DNA from: Octopus bimaculoides
Lineage: Eukaryota
Length of the DNA stretch: 64,000 nucleotides
Reading direction: 5' to 3'
Assembly (NCBI RefSeq): GCF_001194135.2
Contig: NC_068983.1
Coordinates: 147,271,033 to 147,335,032 of the forward strand
Numbering within the stretch: position 1 is the first letter of the stretch; every line of letters begins with the position of its first letter. The position numbers and the translations under genes are program-made. Below the pieces are notes generated by a model. The model was not told where the DNA came from, searched no databases, and saw nothing but the letters and a program-made list of their open reading frames with translations. Of the stretch, positions 909-59,656 are shown piece after piece.

Positions 909-1015
909 GTAAAGTGGACACATGGAAAAAATGGTTAACGGTGGAACAAAGTGAAAGAATCGATGCAAGGATCCAATCAGAATTCACGGATCAAGGAATC
1001 ATTTTTAATTTTTGA
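909..1015 (+). CDS. Terminal coding exon of an upstream cytosolic sulfotransferase-like paralogue (rest of gene lies before the window)
   Basis: Acceptor atttacag at 901-908. Phase-1 exon reads (G)KVDTWKKWLTVEQSERIDARIQSEFTDQGIIFNF-stop. 107 bp, 6 nt differences from 30852-30958. Contains the KxxxTVxxxE SULT dimerisation motif. Confidence 0.9.
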
Positions 1016-8479: not shown

Positions 8480-9540
8480 TTTTCTTTTTTTTTTAACAAA
8501 AAGAAGAAAATGCTGCAACAACTTGCGAAAACATTTGTGAAGTTTATGGTGACGCTGCTGTAGGTGAATCAACTGTTCGAAGGTGGTTTGCTAAAGCTAG
8601 ATAGTTTCGTTTGGAAGATGACAGTTGCAGTAGAAGACCTTCAAAATTGAATGAAGACATTCTGAAGGCAAAAATCGAAGAAAACTCAAATATCACGACC
8701 AGAGAACTTGCAGATGAGTTGGAAGTTTCTAAAAGTATGGCTCCTGAAGACCGGGTGAAGCTAGGATACATTTCTTGCTATTTATGTATGGGTCCCTCAC
8801 AAACTCTCAGAAAAGAATTGCTTAGACCAGTATTCTGTTTGTGATACACTTTTGAAACAGAATGAAAGTATACCTTTTTTGAAACAACTTGTGACTGGAG
8901 ATGAAAAATGGATTGTGTACGAAAACAAAGTGCGAAAAGATCCTGGAGTTTGAGTAAAGATCTCCCAAAACAGAAAACAAAGACGAATATCCATGCCAAA
9001 AAAGCTATGCTTTGTGTTTGGTGGGATCATAAAGGTATTATTTATTATGAGCTTCTCCCAGAAAATCAAACCATTAATTCTGATGTGTACTGTCATCAGC
9101 TAGTTAATTTGAACCAAAAAATAAATGAACTGAGGCCGAAGATTGCCAACAGAAAGTGGGTAGTATTCCAACAAGACAATTCCCGACCACATGTGTCTTT
9201 GGCTACCCGAACAAAGTTATATGAACTTGGCTCAGATCTCTTACCCTATCCACCATATTCTGATCTCGCGCCATCTGACTACCACTTGTTTGTGTCCCTA
9301 CAGAACTCATTGCAAGGAAAAACATTTAACAGTTTAGATGGAGTCAAAATGCATCTAGGTAACCATTTTCTTCAAAACCAATCAAATTTTATATTGATGG
9401 AATATTCAAACTGATAGATGGGTAAAGGACATTAATAATAATGGAAATTATTTCAGCGAATAAAATTTATTAAAAGGTCCGTTATTTATATCCCTTTTTG
9501 CATATTAAAAACTGCTCAGAACTTCCCAAACAACCTAATA
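8480..9540 (+). mobile_element. 5'-truncated mariner (Hsmar1-like) transposon pseudogene
   Basis: EVYGDAAVGESTVRRWF, WIVYEN, KAMLCVWWD, FQQDNSRPH, YPPYSDLAPSDYHLF; 3' TIR ends caacctaata (reverse complement TATTAGGTTG). Confidence 0.9.
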
Positions 9541-14184: not shown

Positions 14185-14395
14185 ATGAGTAAAGAAATGA
14201 ACCCTGAAGAAATAAAAAAGGAAATTGAAAGTAATTTTAAACAATACTTCGGCAAAGATGGAGAACCTTTATCAGTTTATCAATATAAAGGACACAATAT
14301 TATGAAATTCGACATTGCAGTTTCAGCTTTATCCAAACTACATATGGTGAAAATCAGACCAGATGATATTTTGATGTTTTCCTATCCTGCAGCCG
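14185..14395 (+). CDS. SULT-like gene A exon 1
   Basis: ATG MSKEMNPEE...IRPDDILMFSYPAA(G); donor GTCAGA at 14396 (weak but at the position homologous to gene B). Confidence 0.8.
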
Positions 14396-16379
14396 GTCAG
14401 ATTTTATTATATCGCTTATTGTTAGGCAAAATATTTTTACATTGTAGCCAGGGTATGATTGCATGTCTCTGTATGACGTTCATACGTGTACTATTTGTTT
14501 GTGTTTGTGTAATTTATTTACATATTTCTATTCAACATACTCTATGTACCCTTCATGCACTTTGTTATCCTATATTTACTTAGTTTTGTAAAGATGAATA
14601 TATTTCTCTATTTTTATTTATTCCCTTTTTATCTATTTCTTCCCTTGCGTGTGTGAGGATTTTTACGTGTCTGCGTGTACTTGCGTATGTATGTATATGG
14701 GTATAAATGATGTTTGTACATATGTTGAAACTTTTGACTTACAACTGTCTTGTGTAGCTGCTGGGATGCCCCTGAGTGTATGCGTGTGTATTCGAGTTCA
14801 TGTGACTTATCGTTTTCGGCTTTATACCCTTCTCGGCTAGTTCTACTTTTTCAGATTAACCATAATAATTATTGACTTCAATACCAACACCTTCGTTGCC
14901 AATACCAACACATACACCACCTCTGGCACTCACTTCTACTCATTTGTTTGTTATTACCATCACGAACAACACACATACAGCCATCATCACGCTTCAACGT
15001 CAACACAGTCGACATCTGACTCGACCAACCCCCGACTCGAACGGCGGTAACTGTATCATTAGCCCCAACAGCTTTTTTCTCCCCATCTTCTTCACCATGT
15101 TCCACAAATTCCAAACGTATACAAGTTCAATTCTGTTACAAAATTGTACACAAAATTCAAATCTTTAGAATCCTTTTACAGTTTCTGCTTAGACGTAATC
15201 CCTACCTTAACTCAAAATTGTAATCCTAAGTGCTAACACGAAACCCAAACTTCAGATGCTGACCTTCGGCAGAACAAGAAAGAGCGTAATATGAAAAAAG
15301 CGGGGTGGGTGGGAGAGAGGGGGAGGGGAGAGAGGAGAAGGGGAGAGATGTGCGTATCTATGTGTGTAACAATTTTAGAGTTCGGATTCTCGAGTTAGGG
15401 TTAGTTTTAGGGTTAGGGTTAGGGTTACGGTTACGGTTAACAGTCTAGTTAGNNNNNNNNNNNNNNNNNNNNNNNNNNNNNNNNNNNNNNNNNNNNNNNN
15501 NNNNNNNNNNNNNNNNNNNNNNNNNNNNNNNNNNNNNNNNNNNNNNNNNNNNNNNNNNNNNNNNNNNNNNNNNNNNNNNNNNNNNNNNNNNNNNNNNNNN
15601 NNNNNNNNNNNNNNNNNNNNNNNNNNNNNNNNNNNNNNNNNNNNNNNNNNNNNNNNNNNNNNNNNNNNNNNNNNNNNNNNNNNNNNNNNNNNNNNNNNNN
15701 NNNNNNNNNNNNNNNNNNNNNNNNNNNNNNNNNNNNNNNNNNNNNNNNNNNNNNNNNNNNNNNNNNNNNNNNNNNNNNNNNNNNNNNNNNNNNNNNNNNN
15801 NNNNNNNNNNNNNNNNNNNNNNNNNNNNNNNNNNNNNNNNNNNNNNNNNNNNNNNNNNNNNNNNNNNNNNNNNNNNNNNNNNNNNNNNNNNNNNNNNNNN
15901 NNNNNNNNNNNNNNNNNNNNNNNNNNNNNNNNNNNNNNNNNNNNNNNNNNNNNNNNNNNNNNNNNNNNNNNNNNNNNNNNNNNNNNNNNNNNNNNNNNNN
16001 NNNNNNNNNNNNNNNNNNNNNNNNNNNNNNNNNNNNNNNNNNNNNNNNNNNNNNNNNNNNNNNNNNNNNNNNNNNNNNNNNNNNNNNNNNNNNNNNNNNN
16101 NNNNNNNNNNNNNNNNNNNNNNNNNNNNNNNNNNNNNNNNNNNNNNNNNNNNNNNNNNNNNNNNNNNNNNNNNNNNNNNNNNNNNNNNNNNNNNNNNNNN
16201 NNNNNNNNNNNNNNNNNNNNNNNNNNNNNNNNNNNNNNNNNNNNNNNNNNNNNNNNNNNNNNNNNNNNNNNNNNNNNNNNNNNNNNNNNNNNNNNNNNNN
16301 NNNNNNNNNNNNNNNNNNNNNNNNNNNNNNNNNNNNNNNNNNNNNNNNNNNNNNNNNNNNNNNNNNNNNNNNNNNNNNN

Positions 16380-16444
<65 letters not shown>

Positions 16445-19400
16445 GCACGCGCACACTGTTTTCATTAGTTATCGTCTGTCTGTTACGACTTGGCTTTGTA
16501 AACTGATTGAAAGCGCATATGTTCCAGAATGACAGTTTTATAAACGTTATCATCACACTGCCATTCCATATTTGTCGCTCACACTACTCAGTTCTCTCCC
16601 TCCCTGATATCAGTCACTCTCCCTATATCACCTCATTTCTCTCACACTAATACTATTGCACCCTTCTCATTTTACCCAAAACTAACCCACCATTGTTGTT
16701 GTTGTTGTTGTTGTTGGCACTCCGTCGCTTACGACATCAAGGGTTCCAGTTGATCCGATGAACGAAACAACCTGCTCGTGAAATTAACGTGCAAGTGGCT
16801 GAGCACTCCACAGACACGTGTACCCTTAACGTAGTTCTCGGGGATATTCAGCGTGACACGATGTGAAAAGGATGACCCTTTGAATTACAGGCACAACAAA
16901 AACAGGAAGTAGGAGTGAGAGAAAGTTGTGGTAAAAGAGTACTGCAGGGTTCGCCACCATCCCCTGCCGGAGCCTCGCGGAGCTTTAGGTGTTTTCGCTC
17001 AATAAACACTCACAACGCCCGGTCTGAGAATCGAAACCATTTTAAAGATGAAGACTTTTATCTAGAGGCCACACCTTTCAATTGAGCAAACTCAAAGTTG
17101 CCATGTAAACTCCTCACCACATTTAACATCGTTGTGCAAATTTTCAGGTCAATCTAACCACATTTACTAACTTTTGCCTGCACAACTGCGTGTGAGACAA
17201 AGTCCGCCCTTTTCAGACTNNNNNNNNNNTTTAACATCGTTGTGCAAATTTTCAGGTCAATCTAACCACATTTACTAACTTTTGCCTGCACAACTGCGTG
17301 TGAGACAAAGTCCGCCCTTTTCAGACTAACAGAGAAACCCATCCTTGCTCGGGATTAAAATGGCATAGTTTTTTTTATTGTTTTACTTGTTTCAGTATTA
17401 TAACCCGATTTCTTTTGTATCTACTCGGGCCACATTTTAAAGATGAGGAATTCCAAACAAAAAAAAAAAAAACAACGAAAATTTTATTAAAAATTAGTAA
17501 TGAAAAAAAGCATGCCAAATGTTTAAACAGTCTTTGAGACGTGATTGGAGAAACCTCACGGATGCAGATGTGAAGAGCAAAGAATGACGGGAAAATGCTG
17601 GAAAAAAAAAACACAAAACACAAATCAGGTCTCTGCACAAAACTGAAACAGTATAATACGACTGCACTTACAATGCCTTGGAAAAAATATGGAGGTAGTT
17701 GGCTGTTGAAGAATTCAATAGGGTAGATGACGGAATCGTCTGTGCTTTTGTTGGTGTCAATTGACTTGAATGAGACATCATCTCCTAGAATCTGATCAAG
17801 CAGGTGTTGATTCATTGCGTCAACGGTGACATTATGTGGTGCTAAAATAGCTCTCTCTTGCAGCCAGTTGTGATCAAGGAATCATGCTTCGAAGTCTGGG
17901 AAAACAGATGACACAAAGTTCTCAAATGGCAGACGGATGTGCTCTTCATCAATTCCAGGTGTAGCTCCATTACTAACTTCCTGTAAGAGTTTTGAGAAAT
18001 CCACAGAGTCTGTATCACCATTCACATGCACTCTCATGTTAGTAGTCAGGTTTAGTTTCTGGACATATTGCCATAGGTAGGATGACTTGATGCATTTATT
18101 AACATCGTCAGCTCTAGTGCCTCTAGTGATTACAGGAAGTGTCTGACGAAAATTGCCAGCCATCACTACCGTTGCTCTACCCATTATGTGTTAATTTCGA
18201 TGCAAGTCTTCGAGAGTTCGGTCTAAAGCCTCAAAGGTCACTTTGTAACTCATTGTAGCCTTATCCCAAATGATTAGACAGCAATCACAAAGAAGTTTTC
18301 CTTTTGAGTTGCCATGATTTATTTTGCATGTAGGATTCTCCTTCTTTGCAAGGTCCATAGGCAATTAGAATGCGGAGTGTGCCGTACGACCGCCATGTAA
18401 CAGTGTTGCCGCAATACCACTTGAGGTAACCACTAAAGCAATCCGCCTGTCTTTCTGCAGCTTCGCGATGGTTTATTTACTGCAAAAATATTTTAAAATG
18501 CAGAGCATGAGGGTTTGTATGAAAGTTGAACTCAAATATGGAGAAATTTTAAAAAATTGAATTGATAAACTCGGCTTTCAACATTTGTCAGACGGAAAAT
18601 AACAGTGGATGTCGGTAGAAAACGTGCCTGCAAATCACTACATGCGCTTTGGCTTTGATTGCTCTGGTTAGTAAGAGAGGTCGCCTGATTGGCAGAAAAA
18701 ACAATAGACGACATAGATGGGATCTATAAGACGTGTCTGGGCATTTTATTCAGCATGCTAATGGAAAAACTATCTTTAACGTAGATATGAAGGCAAATTT
18801 GCCATCCAAGTTGATTTATAATGATAATAATAGAAGCTGTAAATGTAGAAGGTGACAGTGTATTTACAGCAAAGTAAAGTTCTCATTGATGTGCAAGTTA
18901 AAAATTGCGTAGTATTAAAGTTTGTATATAATTTTAAATCACTAATGAAGAAATTAAAAAGAAACTGAATTGATTAACTTGGCAACAAAATTTTTCAAGC
19001 AGAATTTAAGTTTTCAGCATTTAATAGAATGAAAATAAAGAAAGAAATCGGTAAAAAAACGAACGTGTGCATGCGTCTCCCTTCTTTGCCATTTAAGGGC
19101 TCTATTTCTTTTGAGAGAATACACTGGGCATTTTCAGTTGGAAATATTGTATAACGATACTATATAAGCATTATAAAATTAGTTTATGTTAAATACTAAA
19201 CAACTGTATGTAAAAGTATTTTTGGTTGAAAACCGAATAACTGAGAGGAAGAAGTCTTTTAAATAAGGAGGCTCAATATAAAATTTATGCATTCATTGAG
19301 TGTTAAATGGTAATGTTAGAAAGAAAATGTTCTGAGATTATTAAGGTTTCTTGATTTTGAAATGCTTTATAAAATAAAATTATTTTTAAAAAGGCACAAT

Positions 19401-20857
19401 AAAAGGGCAGACATGTAAAATATAGCGCTAATATTGAAGAGAAAATAGTCTGTGATTTTTTACGTATCATGAATTTGCAATTCTTTACAAAAACAAAATG
19501 CATCATTAAGCATTAAATCATCCAAGAGAAATCAACAGCAAAAATTGCAGTCACCAAGAGAAGATTCAACTCAAATGAAAAGTGGCTAAATCTCAACGTC
19601 AGCTAAACTTACAGAGAGAGAGGCGGGGAGAGGAAGAGTGACAGGGAGATAGGGAAGACGGAGAGAGTAGAAGCTGTTAGATTCCGTTCTAGAGACAAAG
19701 TGAAGGAAAGGGAGGAAAGAAAGAGATTGAGGAAGAAAGGCTGTTGTGTATAGAAAGAGAGGACGCAAACACCTGTCAAAATCCACAAACACTTGTCAAA
19801 GCCAAACCTTTCAATTGAGCAAACTCAAATTTGCCATGCATGGTCCTCAGTCTGTTCCTCATAGGTGTGCAAATTTTCAGCTTGTAATGTCTCTATTGCA
19901 ACTATCAACCTTTTACAAGCTCAATCCGACCGCATTTACTAACACTTTTGCCTGCATAACTGTATGAGACAACGTCCACTCTTTTTACAAATATATATTA
20001 GATAAAATAAATTTCATCGGGTGGACCTGCAAAATGTTGTATGTGCTGTACAAGTACAGATACTACGGTGATATATTTCCTCCTGTATATTTTGTATACC
20101 ATTATAAGTTCACCACTCATCAAATACAATTTGTATTCCTGGTGGAATGTTATTTAGAATGATCGTATTTTTGTCCTACCTTTATTGTACTTCCTCTCAA
20201 GAAAATGGATTTCGGTTTATTCTTAGTACCATAAAAAGTGCCTTCTGTAAGTCCATACCAAAAATACTGTACTGGATGTTGTGTGATAAGATATATGCAG
20301 TTGTCTCTGCAGAACTGGTGCCCAATCAGTGACAGTTTTTCTGACAGTAAATTTAGTTCCAGCGACTGCATCCTTTCATAACGTTTCGTAAATGAAAATC
20401 ATTATTTTGTAGAACTAATTTGATCTTACGTTTTACTATTGTACACACTGCAAGCGAGGTGTGGCTGAAGTTTGCTTCCCAACTGCATGGTTCCATACTG
20501 GGCATATTTGCTTATAATATACCAAAAGGTATTCACAACCCATGGGACATCCTAGAGTATACCAAACACACCTAGGGTGTTAAATACTCATAAGGGTTAA
20601 ATTGTCTGTGTGCACAACCTGAATATTTTGCTGAATGTACTTCAGTACCCAGTAAATCTATTCAACTAAAGATGGTGCTTACAGGTTAATTCAGCCCAAC
20701 CTGGTGTATATCATTTGAGCACCCGATTTTCTCCAGAATCCTTAATATTATATATATATCTGTTTATCAATTCGTTTTGCAAGATTCCTGATGTGAACTC
20801 GTGTGTTGAAACAGATATTGTTGTATTTCGGGATGATCATTTTATCTATTTTAAAGA

Positions 20858-20919
<62 letters not shown>

Positions 20920-23900
20920 TCATGTGTTGCGTATGGATGAGGACAGCTGTGTGAAAGAGTGTCACACCCTAGCAGTAGAGGGAGCCTGTGAAAGAAGTAG
21001 ATCTAAGAAGACCTGAGATGAGATGGTAAAGCACAACCTTCGAACATTGGGCCTCACCGAAACGATGACAAGTAACGGAGACCTTCGGAGATATGCTGTG
21101 CTTAAGAAGACCCGACAAGCCAGGTGAGACGGTAACCGTGGCCTATGCCAGCGCAGCAGCATAACCAGCCCATTTAATAGTACCCTTCAATCATTGAGCA
21201 ATAAACTGCGTTTGCGAAGACCTGTTGAAGCAAGTGAAGTCATTGTCATGGCCGTTGACAGTACCGCCCAATTGGCACCCATGCTGTTGGCACATAAAAA
21301 GCACCATTCGAGCGTGACCGATGCCAGTGCCACCTGACTGGCTCCCATGCTGGTGACATGTAAAAAGCAGCATTCAATAGTAGCTGATGCCAGTGCTGCC
21401 TGACTGATTCCCGTGCCTGTGGCACGTAAAAATCACCATTCGAGCGTGGTCGTTGCCAGTGCCGCCTGACTGGCGCCCGTGCCGGTGGCATGTTACAAGC
21501 ACCATTGAAGCGTGGCCGATGCCAGTACCACCTGACTGGCCCTCGTGCTGGTGGCATGTAAAAAGCACCCACTACACTCTCGGAGTGGTTGGCATTAGGA
21601 AGGGCATCCAGCTGTAGAGACTCTGCCAAATCAGATTGGAGCCTGGTGCAGCCTCCTGGCTCACCAGCCCTCAGTTCAAACCGTCCAACCAATGCCATAA
21701 TGGAAAGCAGACATTAAACAACAACGACAACGACGATGACGATGCTGATGAAATACTCCAACACACATGCCTCTGCCTCTATTCGTTTTGATCGTTTCTC
21801 TTGGCATGTTTGAGTTAACACTAGTTTTTACACTATCGACTTTTGATACAGCCTTATTTAAAGGACAAGAGCCTGCATTTTTGCATGAGTAATTTAGATT
21901 TACTCGCTGGATGGGTTTACTGAAGATCATCACTTTTATATTAGGTCTGAAACTGTATCTTATTTTCACAGAACGTCTCTTCAAAATTGTCCTATACATA
22001 TGGTATGGAGATATGTTTAAGTGGGATAAGCACTTTCACCTGATATTAGTATTAATAATTAGAGAGACTGAGGGACAAACACAATAATTTTTTGCTTCTA
22101 ATAATTGTGGACAATGATCATGTGTTGCAAGACTGCATGAAATGTATTGTCTTTGAAAACAATGTGTTGTAGTACTTCCATGTTTCTACTCCAAATTACC
22201 TTTTCAAGTCACTGCCAGCTCAACAAACAAATCTAGTGAAATCATGAGTTTAGGTGCTGTGTTGTTATTGTAATATGGCTTTTGTCAAATACACCGGAGT
22301 CTTCCAGCTATAAACATTATATAGAAGTCTGGATGACAGCTTCTCCTAATTGATATGCCTGCACTATGTTTCTTAGCCTGCTTTTGAAAGGTAAAAAGTA
22401 AAGACAGTTTGTGCTGACATTGAGGCACTTGTGTTGCTGGTGTAATGCATCAGAATTCATATACATTTATGTTTGAGTGGTCGGGTATGTGTACGTGCTT
22501 GCATGTGTGCATGTGCGTGTGTTCTGTGTGTGTGTGTGTGTGTGAGTGTGTGTGCTCCAGGACTCTTTTATGTGCTCATGTTGCGCACGGAAGTATATAG
22601 ACAAATAAATCAATTCCATGATTTCATTTCTGACAAGTGTAATTTAGACACTGAACATTAAATCACGTTTCGCAATAACATAGGATTTCTTTTTCAGCAT
22701 TCACAGCCTTATTACTCACTTAATTTTGCAAACCTTTTAATTTTACAAATTCATTTAATTCTATAATTGGAGAAATCTCGAACGCACAACAATTATTCTT
22801 TAACTATTGAAATATTAGATTTAATTTCCGTAAACCAATATCTCTGATCACCAAATAGAAGCAACTATTCCTTACTACTGTCTTAGGTCGTCAGAGAGAT
22901 TCATATTTATCCATTTATACATTTGTTTTAATAACTAGGATTGTATATCACATTTCAGGATCGCATTGGATGTTTGAAATCGTTAATATGATATTGAAAG
23001 GAAGCACTGAAAGGGTTTCCTTGCTAAAAGAAGACTTACTGTTAGATTGGTCACCATTTGAAAAGCTAGATTCCATTGAATCCCCTCGACTCTTGAACAC
23101 GCACCTTCCTCCTGAACTTCTGCCTCAAGAATTGCTAAAGGATCATAAAATGATATTCCTCAACCGCAACCCGAAAGCTATGCTGGTGTCGTTCTACAGA
23201 CATATATTAGACGTTAATTTGTTGAACTACAAAGGAGATTTTCTAAGCTATTTTGACCTTTGGATGCAAGGAGAAGGTAAGCCTATAAAGTTATTGTTAC
23301 TACCACTACTGCTAGTACTACTAAAGCGGTTCGATAACTTAATTAGCTTCACTGGCCTTCAGAAGAAAAGATATCTGAAAGTTTGTTTCATACTCTTGTT
23401 CAGGTGTAAAAGGGAAATGAAATTAGTTATCCCACTATATTATTTTTGCCTGTATCTCACAAAGCCATGCATCTACAAATATATCATTATATCTTAACAT
23501 AGATCTAGTCACAATCAAAGTCATGTACCAATAATGACATTCAACCTAGATGTATAAGCGCAACCTTAGACGTTTATCTTACATATTCCTAGTCATCCTT
23601 CTTAGAACATAGATGTTCTTCTCAGATAGTGATTAAAAGATTTTTGGACTGCATCTAACCTTCATAGATGTAGTAGTGAAGCGTCTGCAGATGAAACACA
23701 AAATGAGCATCCAGCTTTGATATTTATGTATTCGATTTCAGTTTAAACTAGAAATTCACATTCAAAAGCAACAATCTTTTTCTTTTCAGTTTAGCACCAC
23801 ACCCAAGAATCTTTTCTTTGTGGATTCTAATGCTTGTCTCATATTCTCTCAACACTTTTTATTTTATATTCTCTTATTGATATTTTCTATCTGGTCATAA

Positions 23901-26900
23901 AATACACATCAAGTCGAGTCTTTTCCTTCAATTAATATATTTTAGATTATATCAGTGGAAGTATGTGACTAGAGCACATTTTATCGATTTTGAGGGTGAA
24001 AACCAAAGTATATTCTGATCTCATCTTAACTTAGGACAAATTAAATACAACGTTCTGAGATTTTCAATGCATTATATCTGAAAGTTCATATTTTTATAAA
24101 ATTTTTTTACCTATTATCAATCACCTCTGTTGTATGCACAGAGATGCCATCAATAAGACTTTGCAAATATCTATCTTATATACACTAATGAAAATATAAA
24201 TTTAATAAATTCCCTCTATAATCGTCTGTAAAATATAAAATTTTGTGCCCCCTTCTTCAACAAAAAAAAAAAAAAGATGCTAAATATATTTTCGTTTTAA
24301 ACATTGCATTGTATTTATAGTTTAATTTAACAAAGAGGTTGGCTATTCTTTTGAAAGTTATTACACAGACATGTTTTCAATTTATTCTTTTAATTTTCCA
24401 GTACCTTGGGATGATTACTTTAAATATGTTCAGGAAATGTATGCTCTATGTAAAGATAACCCAAATGCACTTATCATAACTTATGAAGAAATCAAAGCGG
24501 TAATTACACATTAATATTTGCTTTAATTGTGTTAATTTTATTATAATTTATTTCATATGTTAGTTTCTCAAGTATACACACACACACAAAAGAAATGAAC
24601 AATGACATCATACTTATGAAGTTTTGCTTTTAAATAATTCCGATTAATAAAGTATAATTACCACAAAGAATATCCTCCTTCACCTGCCTACCCCATTTTT
24701 TTAACGTATTAGTCAGAGAGATTGTTGTACTTGTATAAGAAAATATTTTTATGTTAAATACTGAAAATTTCGCAATTTCACTTTATTATTTCTCCTCAAC
24801 AGGATATACCCAAAGCAGTGTCACGTGTTGCTAAATTCTTGGAGAAAACAATTCCTGACCAACTTACAAAGGATATTGCTGATATGTGTTCATTTGATAA
24901 AATGAAATCCGAGAAAAAACTTGTTAGTTCGTATTTACCCAAAGATTCACTCAAAGATGGCGGTACTGTCTTCCATTCTGGTAATTATATTCATATTTTA
25001 TTTGATCAAACTTTCTAGTAGTTTAATTTCTATAAAGTCTAAGACACATATCTAGTCCTGGTAGAAGCTAATTTTTGCTATTACTCTATGCTATAGTGAT
25101 CCAAGCACTACTCATATGAAGGAAACAGGACCGCATGGCACACCAATTAAACAAGAGTAGCACTCAGCTAGAACCCTCACTGTCGCTCCAAATGCTAGGA
25201 CTCACAATTACGAAGGAGTGAGTCCCACAATAGAAAATGTTCCTACATTTGGGATTGTGCTGTTGCTATGCACATATGTGTCCTAGAAGACATTAACGAA
25301 AAGTCACTCGACTAAATGGAATTCAAGCCACAACAAAACGCTCCAACCATTAGTCAGCAGGTGTACTGTCTTCATTCTCTGTCTTTTCTTTCACTTTTAT
25401 AATGGCTTCCGATCTTTGATGCTGATTGCTTTGCACCTGTACCATTCAGACATCGGAGACGCACGTACATTTTCACCTCGAGTAACCTTCCGCTTTGTCC
25501 TCGCCATTATGCTCTGGCCATTTTCTCCAGAATATCCCCATTCTGGAATTTCACAGCCTGTGTTTCTCCTGGATGTATTGAACTGCAAAAGAGATAAAAA
25601 TATTTCTTTCTATTATAGGTACAAGGCCTGCAATTTGAGGGGAGGGGGATAGTCGATTACATCAAGCCCAATACTTGACTGGTACTTAATTTATTGACCC
25701 CGACAGGATGAAAGGCAAAGTCGACCTCGCCGGAATTTGAACTCAGAACGTAGTAGCAGACGAAATGACACCAAGTATTTTGCCCAGTGCGCTAACGATT
25801 CTTCCAGTTTGCCACCTGAGAAAAAAATAATACCATAACATCCAGTCACTGGTTTATTGTATCCATACTTTGTTTAATATACTTGATCAGTATTTTCAAC
25901 TCTTGTATGGACGTTTTTCTTCTAAACGATAACCCATCTATGTAAATATAATTGATTGCTGAGTGTCGCAGAATTGCTTCCTGGGGATACGGCTCGGATT
26001 CAAATCCATTTTATACTTTATGGATATATGTCTTTTCTTCCTTCCATTGCTTTGTCTTTGTTATTTTCTACTGTATCTCTCTTACGTACTTTTGTTCTTT
26101 TTTGTTTCCTATCTGCCTCACTATCTATCCTCCATAGCAATCATTCTCTCTCTGTGTATATATAAACTTATATGTTCATTTTTATTTCTTTAAGTTACCC
26201 TTTCTATTTGTCTACTGTTATCACTTAAATAACTACCTCTATCTTTTTCTCTATTCACATACCTCTCCTTCAATTCTAGCATTCATTTATCTTTATATCA
26301 TTGTAGTTTTTTTTCTACTGTCCATCTTCCTTGGAATCAGTTTATCCTATCGAATTTTCCACTCGTTCATATCTATTTATCTGTAACATTTTTTAAATTA
26401 CTTTTTTGTTTCACCCGTCCTGTTCTGTTCTATCTCTGTAGAGTTATTCCTACTTTTTCCTTCTCTGTGTTTGTGTGTGTGTCTATATAATATTAATAAT
26501 AATAATAATAATAATGATAATAATAATAATAATAAAGGTAAAGAATAAAACTTAAAAAAAAAAATTTATCAGTGGCCAGCATATAAAAAATAAACTGATT
26601 AAAGTGAAATCATATGTATAATTATAATTATATGGAAAAAATTTCTAGCCTATATACTGAAAATAGATGCTAAATCATCTCACCACTTTAAAAACCACAA
26701 AGTTACACACATGTTGAAATCGAGGGAGTAAGCTAACGGCAATTAATAACAATATAGATATCCCTGAATTAGCTAACATTAGGAACGTGTTTTTGTTAGT
26801 CCCTGACTGCGGCGGGTCTGTAACAGCTCAACGGTCACCAAGAGGGATGAAACCACAGCGCGTCGGTCTCTAGTGGTGACTGGGCAGGTGACCAAATCCG

Positions 26901-49600: not shown

Positions 49601-50740
49601 ATAAATACTGTTCTTATAGTAAACTTAGTGAGAAATTACAATTTATTTATACAAATTCTAACCACTTCACAATCATCATCATCATCATTTAACGTCCGCT
49701 TTCCATGCTAGCATGGGTTGGACGACTTGACTGAGAACTGGTGAAACGGGATGGCAACACCAGGCTCCAATCTAAATTTGGCAGAGTTTCTACAGCTGGA
49801 TGCCCTTCCTAACGCCAACCACTCAGAGAGTGTAGTAGGTGCTTTTACATGTCTGATCCAAACTTGCTGGATTTTCCTAAATAATGTGAATAAACATTTT
49901 CACAGAGATAATGAATATCACTAGATAAAGACAGAGCTTTTATAGTTTCACCCAAGAACTTTGCTGCTTCTGTACTCAATATCCTATATGAATGTGAAAA
50001 CCTCTTCCCTTTTATGATATTGCAATAACTGTAAAATCTGCATCTAATTGGCATGTGCCTTTCTAATGCAGTAGTTTGTTGAGCCTACGTCTTCCCTTCA
50101 GATAGGTGAGAAACAAAACAATTATATATAGTGAACTGAAAGGCCATTTAAATAATGAATTTGATAACATATGTATGCATTCAGATACTCAAAAAGACAT
50201 CTAACAAATCAATTTGAACTTTAAAGTATGGTAATATTATTAATTATTAAATCAGATTGGTCCAGTATAAAATATGCATCCCCTAGAAGGGGTGCTCTCT
50301 GTGGCTCAGTGAAGTACAGCATTCTATTTCAGTTCTATCAGTTCTCAGCAACCAATCAAATCTCAATGTATCGTTGAGTACTCTCACGTTGATGTGCTTT
50401 CGATTTTTTTTGCGTATATATTGTCTTGCTGCTTCACTACTTTAATCTTTTAAATTGGTAATGTGAAACTCATTTACGAATCCAAGAAGCTTCAGCTTCT
50501 AATAGTGAATGTAAGGGAGTATTTGTGTGTGTGTATGTGTGTGTGCATATGCATGCATGCTTGCATGTATGCATGTATCAGAATTTATACATCATACAAC
50601 TAGTTAATAAATTCTTTTATCTTCCGTTTACAGGAAAAGTTTCCACTTGGAAGGAATGGTTAACTGTGGACCAAAGTGAACGACTGGATGCACGGATACA
50701 GTCTGAACTCATTGATCAAGAAATCATTTTGAATATTTAA
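35911..50740 (+). CDS. SULT-like gene B, join(35911-36109,40108-40425,43273-43370,48463-48640,50634-50740), 299 aa, Sulfotransfer_1 fold with degenerate PAPS motifs
   Basis: Five GT/AG exons join into an uninterrupted 900-nt ORF; exon 2-5 lengths (318/98/178/107) are identical to gene A. Motifs: AYPTAGTHW, SPRVLNSHF, RNPKAVAVSYY, RSGKVSTWK, KEWLTVDQSE. Confidence 0.92.
36885..37050. mobile_element. Foldback/MITE-like element: about 70-bp inverted arms around a telomeric spacer
   Basis: Arms 36885-36954 and 36979-37050 (2 substitutions and a 2-nt indel); spacer ctgttaggtttagggttagggtta; termini GGC..GCC. Confidence 0.75.
37200..37503 (+). mobile_element. Probable hAT transposase C-terminal dimerisation fragment
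   Basis: GRLFNHMNVMKSNEHNRLSIEALREIL resembles the hATC ERxFSxMxxxKTxxRNRL motif. Confidence 0.45.
38810..39193 (+). mobile_element. Full-length SINE family 3 with 11-bp target-site duplication
   Basis: A-box tggcccagtggttaggg, B-box-like ggtttcgattccc; TSD CATATGCATAT at 38799-38809 and 39194-39204. Confidence 0.9.
39355..39990 (-). mobile_element. SINE family 1 with gapped internal (AT)n
   Basis: Tail ttttacttgtttcagtc and body ccgaattcactcacaaggc on either side of the gap. Confidence 0.7.
40108..40425 (+). CDS. SULT-like gene B exon 2
   Basis: Long polypyrimidine tract + gctacag; (G)THWIWEATNMI...RNPKAVAVSYYRH...FMKGD; donor GTAAAT. Confidence 0.93.
40865..42181 (-). mobile_element. Non-autonomous Helitron with both termini (gap inside)
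   Basis: Minus strand begins A|TCTATAAAAGAGAGG and ends with hairpin cccgagcagcgccggg then ctatactgCTAG|T; A/T target with no TSD. Confidence 0.75.
42841..43007 (+). repeat. Duplicate of 38786-38949 (flank plus SINE 5' half)
   Basis: Shares the non-SINE flank atattgtgttactcatatgcatat. Confidence 0.8.
43273..43370 (+). CDS. SULT-like gene B exon 3
   Basis: ttttgcag acceptor; (V)PTGDYFKYTKQWWSVIKDKPNALIVTYEDASE; donor GTAAAT. Confidence 0.9.
43447..43648 (-). mobile_element. RTE-type 3' tail fragment with (GAT)n tail
   Basis: aacgtccgctttccatgcta..gatgcccttcctaacgccaaccactc shared with 10439, 49672 and 51990. Confidence 0.75.
44700..44975 (+). repeat. Interspersed repeat family X, copy 4
   Basis: Reverse complement of 2115-2370. 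Confidence 0.7.
46040..48060 (+). mobile_element. RTE LINE 5' portion (APE endonuclease to start of RT), 3'-truncated, in intron 3 of gene B
   Basis: RISTLNVGTLKGRS, LCCIQEIRW, VAGDFNGHVG, SQIDYIL, NNYRGIKLL, QFGFMPGKST; frameshifts and stops. Confidence 0.92.
48463..48640 (+). CDS. SULT-like gene B exon 4
   Basis: aattttag acceptor; DFQKVVLTIAEFLDKK...CSFDKMKKEK...SFYRS(G); donor GTAAGT. Not in the ORF track; read by hand. Confidence 0.9.
49672..49850 (-). mobile_element. RTE-type 3' tail fragment
   Basis: Same family as 43447-43648. Confidence 0.75.
50634..50740 (+). CDS. SULT-like gene B exon 5 (terminal)
   Basis: gtttacag acceptor; (G)KVSTWKEWLTVDQSERLDARIQSELIDQEIILNI-stop. Confidence 0.92.
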
Positions 50741-58393: not shown

Positions 58394-59656
58394 TTATTTA
58401 TTTTTTACAGATTTCTTTTTACTGAATACATACTTGTTGATAAGAATATAAAGAATAAAGATTTGAATAAAGAAAAAGATGACACTAGCAAGACAAATAT
58501 ATATAAAAGTGTTGCTACCTTCAAATTCCAAGAAATAAGCAGGTAGAAGCCATATGCCTTGTCCAAGAAACCAAACTAGAATTAAAATCAATCCATGAAC
58601 TACAGTCAGTTGCAGAGAAGGCAGAAGTAAGGGAAGGAGACAGAGGTACCAGAGAAAATATTGGGATGTGCATACTTTGTTAAACATCACAAAAATTACA
58701 GTTAAAAGGAACCAGCAGAAGGGCAAGTCAGCAAAGTATACAAGTGTTATGGCTGAAATTAGAATGATCTGTGGTAGAAAAGTAATGAGGCCAATCAGTG
58801 TTGATTGACTCAAATCTGCTGTAAGATAGAGAAGGTAGAAAAACAGAGAAAAGTTATGCCGAGTATCTTTACGGCTTATGTGATAGAGATATGCTTCCTG
58901 TATAAATGGCCACTCATATGCAAAGTAAAAGATACTAGTCAGTGAAGCTAAAGTTAAGATAGAAACTAAAGCAAATACAATCTGATCAGAGTTGGGTAAA
59001 ATAAGTCTTTTTATCTTTTGTAGCTTCTTGTTAGGTTTTGTAAATGATTCAGATGCAAGGTTTAAGTAAATAGAAGGAGCATAAATGATTGGATATATTT
59101 TGGTGTGTATAGCAATTCCATACAACACAGCTGCAAAAAATAAATGTCTTTTAAGGCATGTTAGTAAGCTAAAAAGAACTAGGAAAGTTATGATAGATTC
59201 AGCATTACCCCGGGTACATATAGTTATAGAGAGTGGATTATACAACCAAAACATTGAACACAATGTAGACAGTCTTCTTGATTGATGTTTTAGTTGAACT
59301 ATCTTGAAAATTGTAAAAGCAGTAAGTAAGTCAAATACTACAAAAACAAATTTCCCAAAATGAAATGAAATTAAAATATTTGGTGTCAAAAAATATGCCA
59401 ACAAAGGTGTATAGCGGTATGTGTGTCTCTTATAAGGACTCAATCCCTCCACAACATGCTTTGCGGCATCAGTAAACACACTGTAATCAATATCTGTATA
59501 TTTGACATCGAAATTTAAGTCTTGCCATATACCATAACCAATTAACACAAACCGAATCAAGCATCCAATGGTTAGATGCCATTTAATGTGTAATAAACTG
59601 GTTTTTGCTGCTGACACTTTGATGAGATTAAATAGGTATTGCATAACGGTCTTCAT
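58394..59656 (-). CDS. PIGM: GPI mannosyltransferase 1 (PIG-M), CDS without introns, 420 aa
   Basis: Intact ORF with PIG-M hallmarks: VKYTDIDYSVFTDAA (lumenal DXD), SPYKRHTYRYTPLLAY, TRGNAES, HTKIYPIIY, YLYHISRKDTRHNFS, FNKVCTSQYFLWY; many hydrophobic TM segments. Confidence 0.96.
   Translation of the reverse strand: MKTVMQYLFNLIKVSAAKTSLLHIKWHLTIGCLIRFVLIGYGIWQDLNFDVKYTDIDYSVFTDAAKHVVEGLSPYKRHTYRYTPLLAYFLTPNILISFHFGKFVFVVFDLLTAFTIFKIVQLKHQSRRLSTLCSMFWLYNPLSITICTRGNAESIITFLVLFSLLTCLKRHLFFAAVLYGIAIHTKIYPIIYAPSIYLNLASESFTKPNKKLQKIKRLILPNSDQIVFALVSILTLASLTSIFYFAYEWPFIQEAYLYHISRKDTRHNFSLFFYLLYLTADLSQSTLIGLITFLPQIILISAITLVYFADLPFCWFLLTVIFVMFNKVCTSQYFLWYLCLLPLLLPSLQLTVVHGLILILVWFLGQGIWLLPAYFLEFEGSNTFIYICLASVIFFFIQIFILYILINKYVFSKKKSVKNK

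Follow-up and report, generated by a model that had tools for sequence, protein, structure and literature searches.

The stretch of DNA analysed here is a window of 64,000 nucleotides from chromosome CM046603.1 of Octopus bimaculoides (~147.28 Mb, assembly GCA_001194135.2), and it contains two complete genes on the + strand whose products belong to the cytosolic sulfotransferase (SULT) superfamily but depart from it in the binding site of the cofactor, 3'-phosphoadenosine 5'-phosphosulfate (PAPS). Gene A (14185-30958) and gene B (35911-50740) each have five exons, all joined at GT-AG sites. The spliced translation of A is identical to P0001, the 303-amino-acid XP_014790788.1 that RefSeq names "sulfotransferase 1E1", and that of B to P0013, the 299-amino-acid XP_014790789.1, "sulfotransferase 1A1 isoform X2". 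Exons 2 to 5 of B have the same phases and lengths as those of A (318/98/178/107 nt).

Exon 1 of gene A (14185..14395) runs from the ATG through residues 1-70 to the first base of Gly71 and carries the SYPAAG of the 5'-phosphosulfate-binding (PSB) loop, in which the codon GCA at 14389-14391 specifies Ala in place of the catalytic Lys48 (motif positions are numbered on a vertebrate-type reference, P0025, in which they coincide with human SULT1A1). The loop is completed by the SHW at 22959-22969, the start of exon 2 (22959..23276), and the same exon encodes NTHLP with the catalytic His retained (23096-23110), RNPKAMLVS with Asp134 changed to Ala (23165-23191) and a clade-specific YRH that contains Arg151 (23195-23203). 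The equivalents of Tyr193 and Phe229 are retained in the TYEE of exon 3 (24402..24499; motif at 24479-24490) and the CSF of exon 4 (24803..24980; motif at 24887-24895). Exon 4 ends in FHS, with Arg257 changed to His and Lys258 to Ser, and exon 5 (30852..30958) supplies GKVDTWK, with Gly262 changed to Asp and Asp263 to Thr, followed by the dimer motif KKWLTVEQSE (30869-30898) and the stop codon.

Gene B follows the same plan. Its first exon (35911..36109) carries the AYPTAG of the same loop, the codon ACT at 36103-36105 giving Thr in place of Lys48, and exon 2 (40108..40425) contributes THW, NSHFY with the His retained (40245-40259), RNPKAVAVS (40314-40340) and YRH (40344-40352). Exon 3 occupies 43273..43370, exon 4 (48463..48640) ends in YRS, so that Arg257 is kept and Lys258 is Ser, and exon 5 (50634..50740) encodes GKVSTWK, the dimer motif KEWLTVDQSE and the stop codon. 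In both genes the PSB motifs exist only after splicing, across the junction of exons 1 and 2 (SYPAAG|SHW in A, AYPTAG|THW in B), and the same is true of the C-terminal motifs across the junction of exons 4 and 5 (FHS|GKVDTWK and YRS|GKVSTWK). The last exon of a paralogue upstream of A is also present (909..1015, + strand); it corresponds to the C-terminal end of P0004 (XP_014790787.1) and has the same (G)KVDTWKKWLTVEQSE. Two alternative first exons of gene B, at 34163-34393 and 37424-37513 on the + strand, belong to the RefSeq isoforms X1 (309 amino acids) and X3 (262 amino acids); in these, exon 1 is swapped for unrelated sequence, and both the N-terminal strand and that half of the PSB loop which reads YPTAG would be missing from the products.

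None of the exons is concealed or interrupted by a gap. Runs of N within the span from A to B are all intronic or intergenic and no exon adjoins a gap, the closest one ending 262 bp upstream of exon 2 of B. In an independent assembly, that of Octopus sinensis, three orthologous genes have an identical five-exon layout (199-211/318/98/178/107 nt). Since the gaps are non-exonic and the exon structure in O. sinensis matches, the coding inference does not depend on continuity across the gaps, and an artefact of the assembly gaps was ruled out. A Lys codon that had been misread or misassembled was likewise excluded, as all the paralogues and orthologues in four species, together with one transcript (P0009, of a clade member), are also without the Lys; a preliminary description of this DNA had named a complementary DNA with Lys at position 48 as the sign of such an error, and this transcript does not have it. 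Other statements of that description held as well. The motifs that it quoted were all located on the + strand, those of the PSB loop and the C-terminus in the spliced product, the reading frames, splice sites and phases that it called intact are those of exact GT-AG models equal to the RefSeq proteins, and the identity of about 46% that it gave for exon 2 of A and B was recounted as 48/105, or 45.7%.

By homology, A and B are members of the cytosolic SULT superfamily. Both match Pfam Sulfotransfer_1 (PF00685) far above the cut-off of 22, with 170.6 bits for A and 179.6 bits for B, and cover profile positions 1-251 of 255. Against the sequences of the solved SULT1E1, 1B1, 1C2 and 1A1 the E-values range from 1e-31 to 1e-36, and retinol dehydratase is also among their homologues in the Protein Data Bank (PDB). 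An AlphaFold2 model of A has a mean predicted local distance difference test score of 89.5 and a predicted template modelling score of 0.89, with lower confidence only in the "cap" loop of residues 241-270, and in Foldseek it matched human SULT1E1, 1B1 and 1A1 with template modelling (TM) scores of 0.78-0.86 and a probability of 1.00. The dimer motif KxxxTVxxxE is intact in both, and its K275, T279, V280 and E284 vary hardly or not at all across a 40-sequence alignment. The closest canonical proteins are SULT1-like, namely the molluscan and lophotrochozoan SULTs with YPKAGTHW, RNPKD and RKGxVGDWKNWFT and, among solved structures, human SULT1E1, 1B1 and 1A1; the octopod proteins resemble them in length, in homology over their full extent and in fold (TM ~0.8). 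Judged by their motifs, A and B lack two of the features that define a catalytically canonical SULT, which are Lys48 and the RKGxxGD motif.

How far these departures are shared was assessed with relatives gathered by running HMMER exhaustively over 1.84 billion cluster representatives and by three word-indexed searches. The resulting alignment comprised 125 single-domain relatives, of which 109 were canonical and 16 formed an octopod core clade that includes A and B. Columns conserved in at least 80% of the 109 canonical proteins numbered 34; the octopod core keeps 27 of them and has changed 7. His108, Arg130, Gly50, Trp53, Gly259, Trp264 and Glu194 are invariant in the core, and Phe229, Thr269 and Tyr193 (15 Tyr, 1 Phe) are kept as in canonical SULTs, as is the dimer motif. 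Ser138, found in 109/109 canonical proteins, is Ser in 12 of the 16 core proteins, A and B included, and Thr in the other 4, with the change to Thr present in some members of the A type. Altogether, 58 columns are invariant across the 16 Octopus and Argonauta proteins.

The seven changed columns tell a different story. Position 48 is Lys in 101 and Arg in 8 of the canonical proteins, as opposed to Gly in 7, Ala in 4, Thr in 4 and Ser in 1 of the core, while Asp134 (94% in the canonical set) has become Ala in 13 and Ser in 3. Arg257 (95%) is His in 11 and Arg in 5, being lost in the A type only and kept in the B type, and Lys258 (94%) is replaced by Ser (14), Thr (1) or Asp (1). The GD of GxxGDWK gives way to Asp or Ser followed by Thr or Ala, with Gly262 (89%) changed to Asp in 11 and Ser in 5 and Asp263 (91%) to Thr in 15 and Ala in 1, and Asn266 (83%) varies among Lys, Glu, Asp and Arg. 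What remains of the C-terminal motif, HSGKVDTWK in A and RSGKVSTWK in B, is Gly259 and the Trp-Lys that follows position 263, together with Arg257 in the B type. All seven changed columns fall within the three PAPS-binding elements, which hold 18 of the 34 conserved columns (hypergeometric p ~0.006, by hand calculation). The replacements vary between paralogues (Gly, Ala, Thr, Ser or, in one further relative, Tyr at 48; Ala or Ser at 134; Ser, Thr or Asp at 258), which suggests that these sites were released from constraint and did not acquire a new specific role; seen together with the Ser138 to Thr change in 4/16, this variation points to a constraint on the cofactor site that is still being released.

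With the 109 relatives as a reference, most of what the preliminary description had said of these residues was upheld. The PSB Lys, the Asp of RNPKD, the Lys of RKG (with the Arg in A) and the second Gly are indeed replaced, to which Asp263 and Asn266 have to be added, and the catalytic His, Arg130 and Ser138 are kept, the last as Ser or Thr across the clade. The observation that the same positions are altered in A and B extends to all core relatives in Octopus and Argonauta. On the other hand, the Ala in place of Ser49, the His in place of Thr52 and the Asn in place of Lys106, which stand in the motifs that it listed, turned out to be the norm in canonical molluscan SULTs (YPKAGTHW, LNTHLP) and form no part of the anomaly. 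The proposal that YPxAG loops are common in invertebrate SULTs was ruled out at the Lys position, where all 109 canonical proteins have K or R.

Every clade member with a species name comes from an octopod, namely O. bimaculoides, O. sinensis, O. vulgaris and Argonauta hians, and no member of this Lys48-less (K-less) clade from squid, cuttlefish or nautilus was present among the named matches. In O. bimaculoides the genes form a tandem array of ~8 loci on one chromosome, comprising the consecutive XP_014790786 to XP_014790794 and at least three more models, with some loci annotated as partial. Three array members on the same chromosome outside the window (P0008, P0033 and P0034) have annotated products that are truncated, skip exon 2 or read into microsatellite-like sequence, and some members of the array may be pseudogenes or mis-modelled. 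The gene order in O. sinensis, P0003 ... P0002 ... P0014, mirrors that of the window and constitutes conserved synteny.

Neighbour-joining trees with bootstrap, computed with a numpy implementation, placed the octopod clade among molluscan SULT1-like proteins and gave the topology (P0035-type,(P0032,(A-type,B-type))). The K-less proteins as a whole grouped with a bootstrap of 64-76%, the core joined P0032 at 92% and was itself supported at 70%, and the A and B subclades reached 100% and 99%, respectively. The P0035 type (P0035, P0175 and P0177, annotated "SULT1B1" and located on another chromosome) has lost only Lys48, with AYPASGTHW or AYPSSGTHW, and retains RNPKD and RKGQVGDWKNWFT. In the Argonauta protein P0032, position 48 is Tyr and the C-terminal motif has RTG and ATWK, with RNPKD still present. 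The simplest reading of this series would be a stepwise erosion in which Lys48 went first, the C-terminal RKG and GD followed, and Asp134 was lost last. Since the substitutions are common to A, B and all their relatives in Octopus and Argonauta, the comparison supports an origin at least as old as the common ancestor of these two genera. A canonical SULT is found in octopods too: Argonauta P0273, with GYFKAGCHW, RNPRD and RKGVVGDWKNWFT, lies on the same chromosome-sized scaffold as Argonauta P0006 and P0016 and has an orthologue in squid, supported at 99% bootstrap, in the likewise canonical P0042 (Watasenia scintillans, BBB86724.1). With P0273 and P0042 canonical, the capacity for sulfonation need not rest on the K-less clade.

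Selection on the genes was estimated with O. sinensis coding sequences taken by exact spliced matching, the ratios of nonsynonymous to synonymous substitution rates (dN/dS) being calculated by the Nei-Gojobori method and by maximum likelihood. The ratio was 0.48-0.49 for A against P0002 and 0.32-0.45 for B against P0014, and it spanned 0.32-0.57 over the between-species comparisons as a whole; A against B gave ~0.15-0.18, with dS saturated. That dN is below dS was significant in Fisher tests of changed versus unchanged sites for A/P0002 (p = 0.0023), B/P0014 (p = 0.00024), A/P0003 (p = 0.0049) and P0002/P0003 (p = 0.00017). The coding sequences are thus under purifying selection, moderately relaxed, and ratios near 1, by which the preliminary description would have recognized pseudogenes, were not obtained (0.32-0.57, p <= 0.0049). 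For one clade member, P0009 (SYPGAGSHW), run SRR3401912 contains a contig of 1,213 nt that encodes it without introns and represents a correctly spliced mRNA; exact-sequence transcript contigs for A or B were not on record in the transcript collection. Simple decay into pseudogenes is excluded because the genes are intact, dN/dS is significantly below 1 and a clade member is represented by a spliced transcript, and assembly error is excluded with it. Of the earlier proposal of an old, selected change of function rather than decay, the parts that speak of age, of selection and against decay are borne out by the shared substitutions, the dN/dS values and the intact genes, while the changed function is something that we infer.

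What such a change might be is best approached from the cofactor. The PSB-loop Lys touches the bridging oxygen of the 5'-phosphosulfate and stabilises the transition state, as established by mutagenesis in the literature on SULT1E1 and flavonol sulfotransferase, and the Arg-Lys-Gly loop holds the 3'-phosphate of PAPS. The Lys has also been described as the catalytic acid, in interplay with a conserved Ser of the 3'-phosphate-binding helix (PMC3733922). Around the phosphates of the cofactor, two positive charges (three in the A type) and two negative ones have disappeared from A and B, a balance that suggests the loss of a network of salt bridges. Because Lys48 is catalytic and Arg257 and Lys258 hold the 3'-phosphate, weak binding of PAPS and poor or no transfer of sulfate would be expected. 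We therefore favour, with a probability of about one half, the view that these are proteins of SULT fold with a de-charged pocket that bind PAPS weakly and transfer little sulfate, if any, and that would serve a non-catalytic or weakly catalytic role and form an independent analogue of SULT4A1.

The clade conserves the fold, the catalytic His, the adenine-stacking Trp53, Tyr193 and Phe229, the 3'-phosphate ligands Arg130 and Ser138 and the dimer motif. Where canonical SULTs grip the phosphosulfate and the 3'-phosphate of PAPS with charged residues or glycine, small or uncharged residues have taken over. The cofactor site thus appears to have been freed from constraint, with the rest of the protein still under it. 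The selected role would most likely be non-catalytic or weakly catalytic: candidates are that the acceptor pocket, which is retained, binds or sequesters small hydrophobic ligands, perhaps while still sensing PAPS or its product 3'-phosphoadenosine 5'-phosphate (PAP), and/or a dimer-mediated regulation in which the protein could pair with itself or with a canonical SULT.

Human SULT4A1 has a SULT fold, is conserved and binds catecholamines, and it showed neither PAP binding nor activity in a family-wide screen (PMC1847840). Its inactivity was attributed to the change of Trp53 to Leu and to a shortened loop without the Lys between Arg and Gly (PMC1847840). Like the octopod proteins, this brain-expressed vertebrate orphan is a selected SULT fold with the His kept and the PAPS pocket hit in the same C-terminal Arg-Lys-Gly loop, and by this analogy it may be regarded as the closest known functional case. 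The two are not orthologous, since the SULT4A1 structure (1zd1) is a weaker PDB match (E = 1.5e-23) than SULT1 or SULT2 and the octopod clade nests with the molluscan SULT1-like proteins. They also differ in how the site was altered: the octopod core keeps Trp53 in 16/16 and nearly the full loop length, with the Lys substituted by Ser rather than deleted. Lys48, Asp134 and Lys258 are lost in the octopods, whereas SULT4A1 retains Lys48, and a tandem family stands against a single SULT4A1 gene.

A second precedent comes from cephalopods themselves, in which the S-crystallins derived from glutathione S-transferase and the omega-crystallin derived from aldehyde dehydrogenase are tandemly expanded and carry substitutions at catalytic or cofactor sites. 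The octopod locus shares with them a detoxification-enzyme fold, tandem expansion and cofactor-site substitutions, a likeness that is an analogy only. SULT-like domains without the Lys are otherwise rare, and outside the octopod clade the survey contained only P0056 and P0125. These are Logan transcriptome contigs that encode multi-domain proteins of two or three SULT domains, some without the PSB Lys, and both the triple-domain P0056 (YPMSGHDW) and the N-terminal domain of P0125 (YPGAGASW) have lost it independently, with further erosion of the motifs. They lie outside the clade and differ from it in being multi-domain and more degenerate, at least two of the three domains of P0056 also being without the catalytic His.

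Several observations weigh against a de-charged, non-catalytic pocket. In proteins with only ~45% identity, the catalytic His and the majority of the residues in contact with the nucleotide do not vary, as would be expected if some catalysis or nucleotide binding were still under selection. The P0035 type is the most conserved octopod SULT compared, with 86% identity between Argonauta and O. sinensis; the B type reaches 73% and the A type 60%, and the canonical SULTs of Argonauta and squid share 52%. A site without Lys48 is thus compatible with a strongly constrained and possibly enzymatic function. Furthermore, the clade has basic residues of its own, with Arg151 (SULT1A1 position 141) in 16/16 of the core and in P0032, Lys270 in 15/16 of the core and Arg89 in 18/19 of the K-less proteins, and these could compensate for the ones that were lost. 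Lys-to-Ala mutants of other sulfotransferases, moreover, retain a small residual activity. A search of the literature gave nothing specific about these genes, K-less SULTs or pseudo-sulfotransferases, nor any published assay.

The alternative that survives best is that A and B are working PAPS-dependent sulfotransferases with a remodelled pocket, Lys48 and Lys258 being replaced in effect by Arg151, Lys270 and Arg89, by a metal ion or by a cationic substrate, and the tandem expansion being the ordinary diversification of xenobiotic- or hormone-conjugating enzymes. Purifying selection on the genes, the near invariance of His108, Arg130, Gly259, Trp53 and Tyr193 in the clade and the high conservation of the K-less P0035 type between Argonauta and Octopus would all suit a working enzyme, and detoxification enzymes typically occur in tandem, fairly fast-evolving arrays. 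New basic residues also became fixed at about the points at which Lys48 and Lys258 disappeared, Arg89 being clade-wide and Arg151 first appearing with P0032. It is harder to reconcile with an active site that Lys or Arg at 48 is universal in 109 canonical relatives, that several phosphate-binding residues have gone together instead of one, that their replacements are variable and not fixed and that the otherwise invariant Ser138 is Thr in 4/16, and the retained His loses some of its force when SULT4A1 keeps it as well and is inactive. On balance, a remodelled enzyme appears somewhat unlikely.

It is rather improbable that the SULT fold, with its general base and nucleotide scaffold kept, has been turned to other chemistry, such as the use of a donor whose 5' group is less charged or of another kind, a dehydration that depends on PAP as in insect retinol dehydratase, or hydrolysis. 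Retention of the catalytic His alongside the loss of contacts to the leaving group and the 3'-phosphate would be in keeping with this, as would the new clade-invariant residues Thr273 (for Asp263), Arg151 and Lys270, and retinol dehydratase, a PDB homologue of A and B, demonstrates that a different reaction is possible on this fold. That enzyme, however, still works with PAPS, the variable residues at 48, 134 and 258 speak against a newly built specific site, and positive evidence of an alternative donor or product is lacking. That the genes are non-functional or being lost, with intact frames that are transient or an artefact of annotation, is largely refuted and very improbable, for the fairly high between-species dN/dS (0.32-0.57) and the neighbouring array members that are truncated or without exon 2 are outweighed by the intact five exons, phases and GT-AG sites of A, B and the three O. 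sinensis genes, by dN/dS significantly below 1 (p = 0.0002-0.005), by the 58 columns invariant across 16 Octopus and Argonauta proteins and by the spliced full-length transcript of a clade member.

The PSB-loop Lys is treated as a defining catalytic residue of all PAPS-dependent sulfotransferases, and here is a whole gene family without Lys48, Asp134, Lys258 and the GD that is nonetheless under purifying selection and tandemly expanded. As an atypical or pseudo-SULT it would be of a known kind; what appears to be new is the octopod clade and its loss of motifs. If its members are inactive, as a de-charged pocket would imply, they would represent an invertebrate pseudo-sulfotransferase family that is described in no paper found, the path from enzyme to non-enzyme could be traced via the P0035 type (Lys48 only) and P0032 (additionally RKG and GD), and a comparative handle would be gained on the role of orphan SULTs of the SULT4A1 type. 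If they are active, they would show how a site of sulfuryl transfer can be rebuilt. Catalysis without the PSB-loop Lys, be it through a relocated Arg151, Lys270 or Arg89, through assistance by the substrate or with another donor or chemistry, would mean an active site re-engineered in one lineage, and this seems to us improbable. The P0035 type is the best single candidate for asking whether a SULT without Lys48 can be active. In either case, the RefSeq names "sulfotransferase 1E1" and "1A1" are derived from vertebrates and misleading, and they give no basis for inferring a metabolism of steroids (oestrogen) or of phenols and xenobiotics in the octopus.

The surroundings of the two genes hold a few further features. 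The 13 kb that separate the upstream paralogue from gene A contain, at 8908-9414 on the + strand, a piece of a mariner/Tc1-type transposase (93 bits against Pfam Transposase_1). Open reading frames of retroelement-like character, by eye resembling reverse transcriptase, occur at 47314-48069 on the + strand, in intron 3 of gene B, and at 32869-33306 beside a gap in the spacer between A and B, and neither gave a Pfam match at E <= 0.001. The assembly gaps are bordered by many microsatellites of the (TG)n, (TA)n and TATC types. Downstream of gene B, on the - strand at 58394-59656, an uninterrupted reading frame of 420 amino acids matches Pfam Mannosyl_trans (PIG-M) over its full length with 280 bits and is apparently an intronless gene for glycosylphosphatidylinositol (GPI) mannosyltransferase I.

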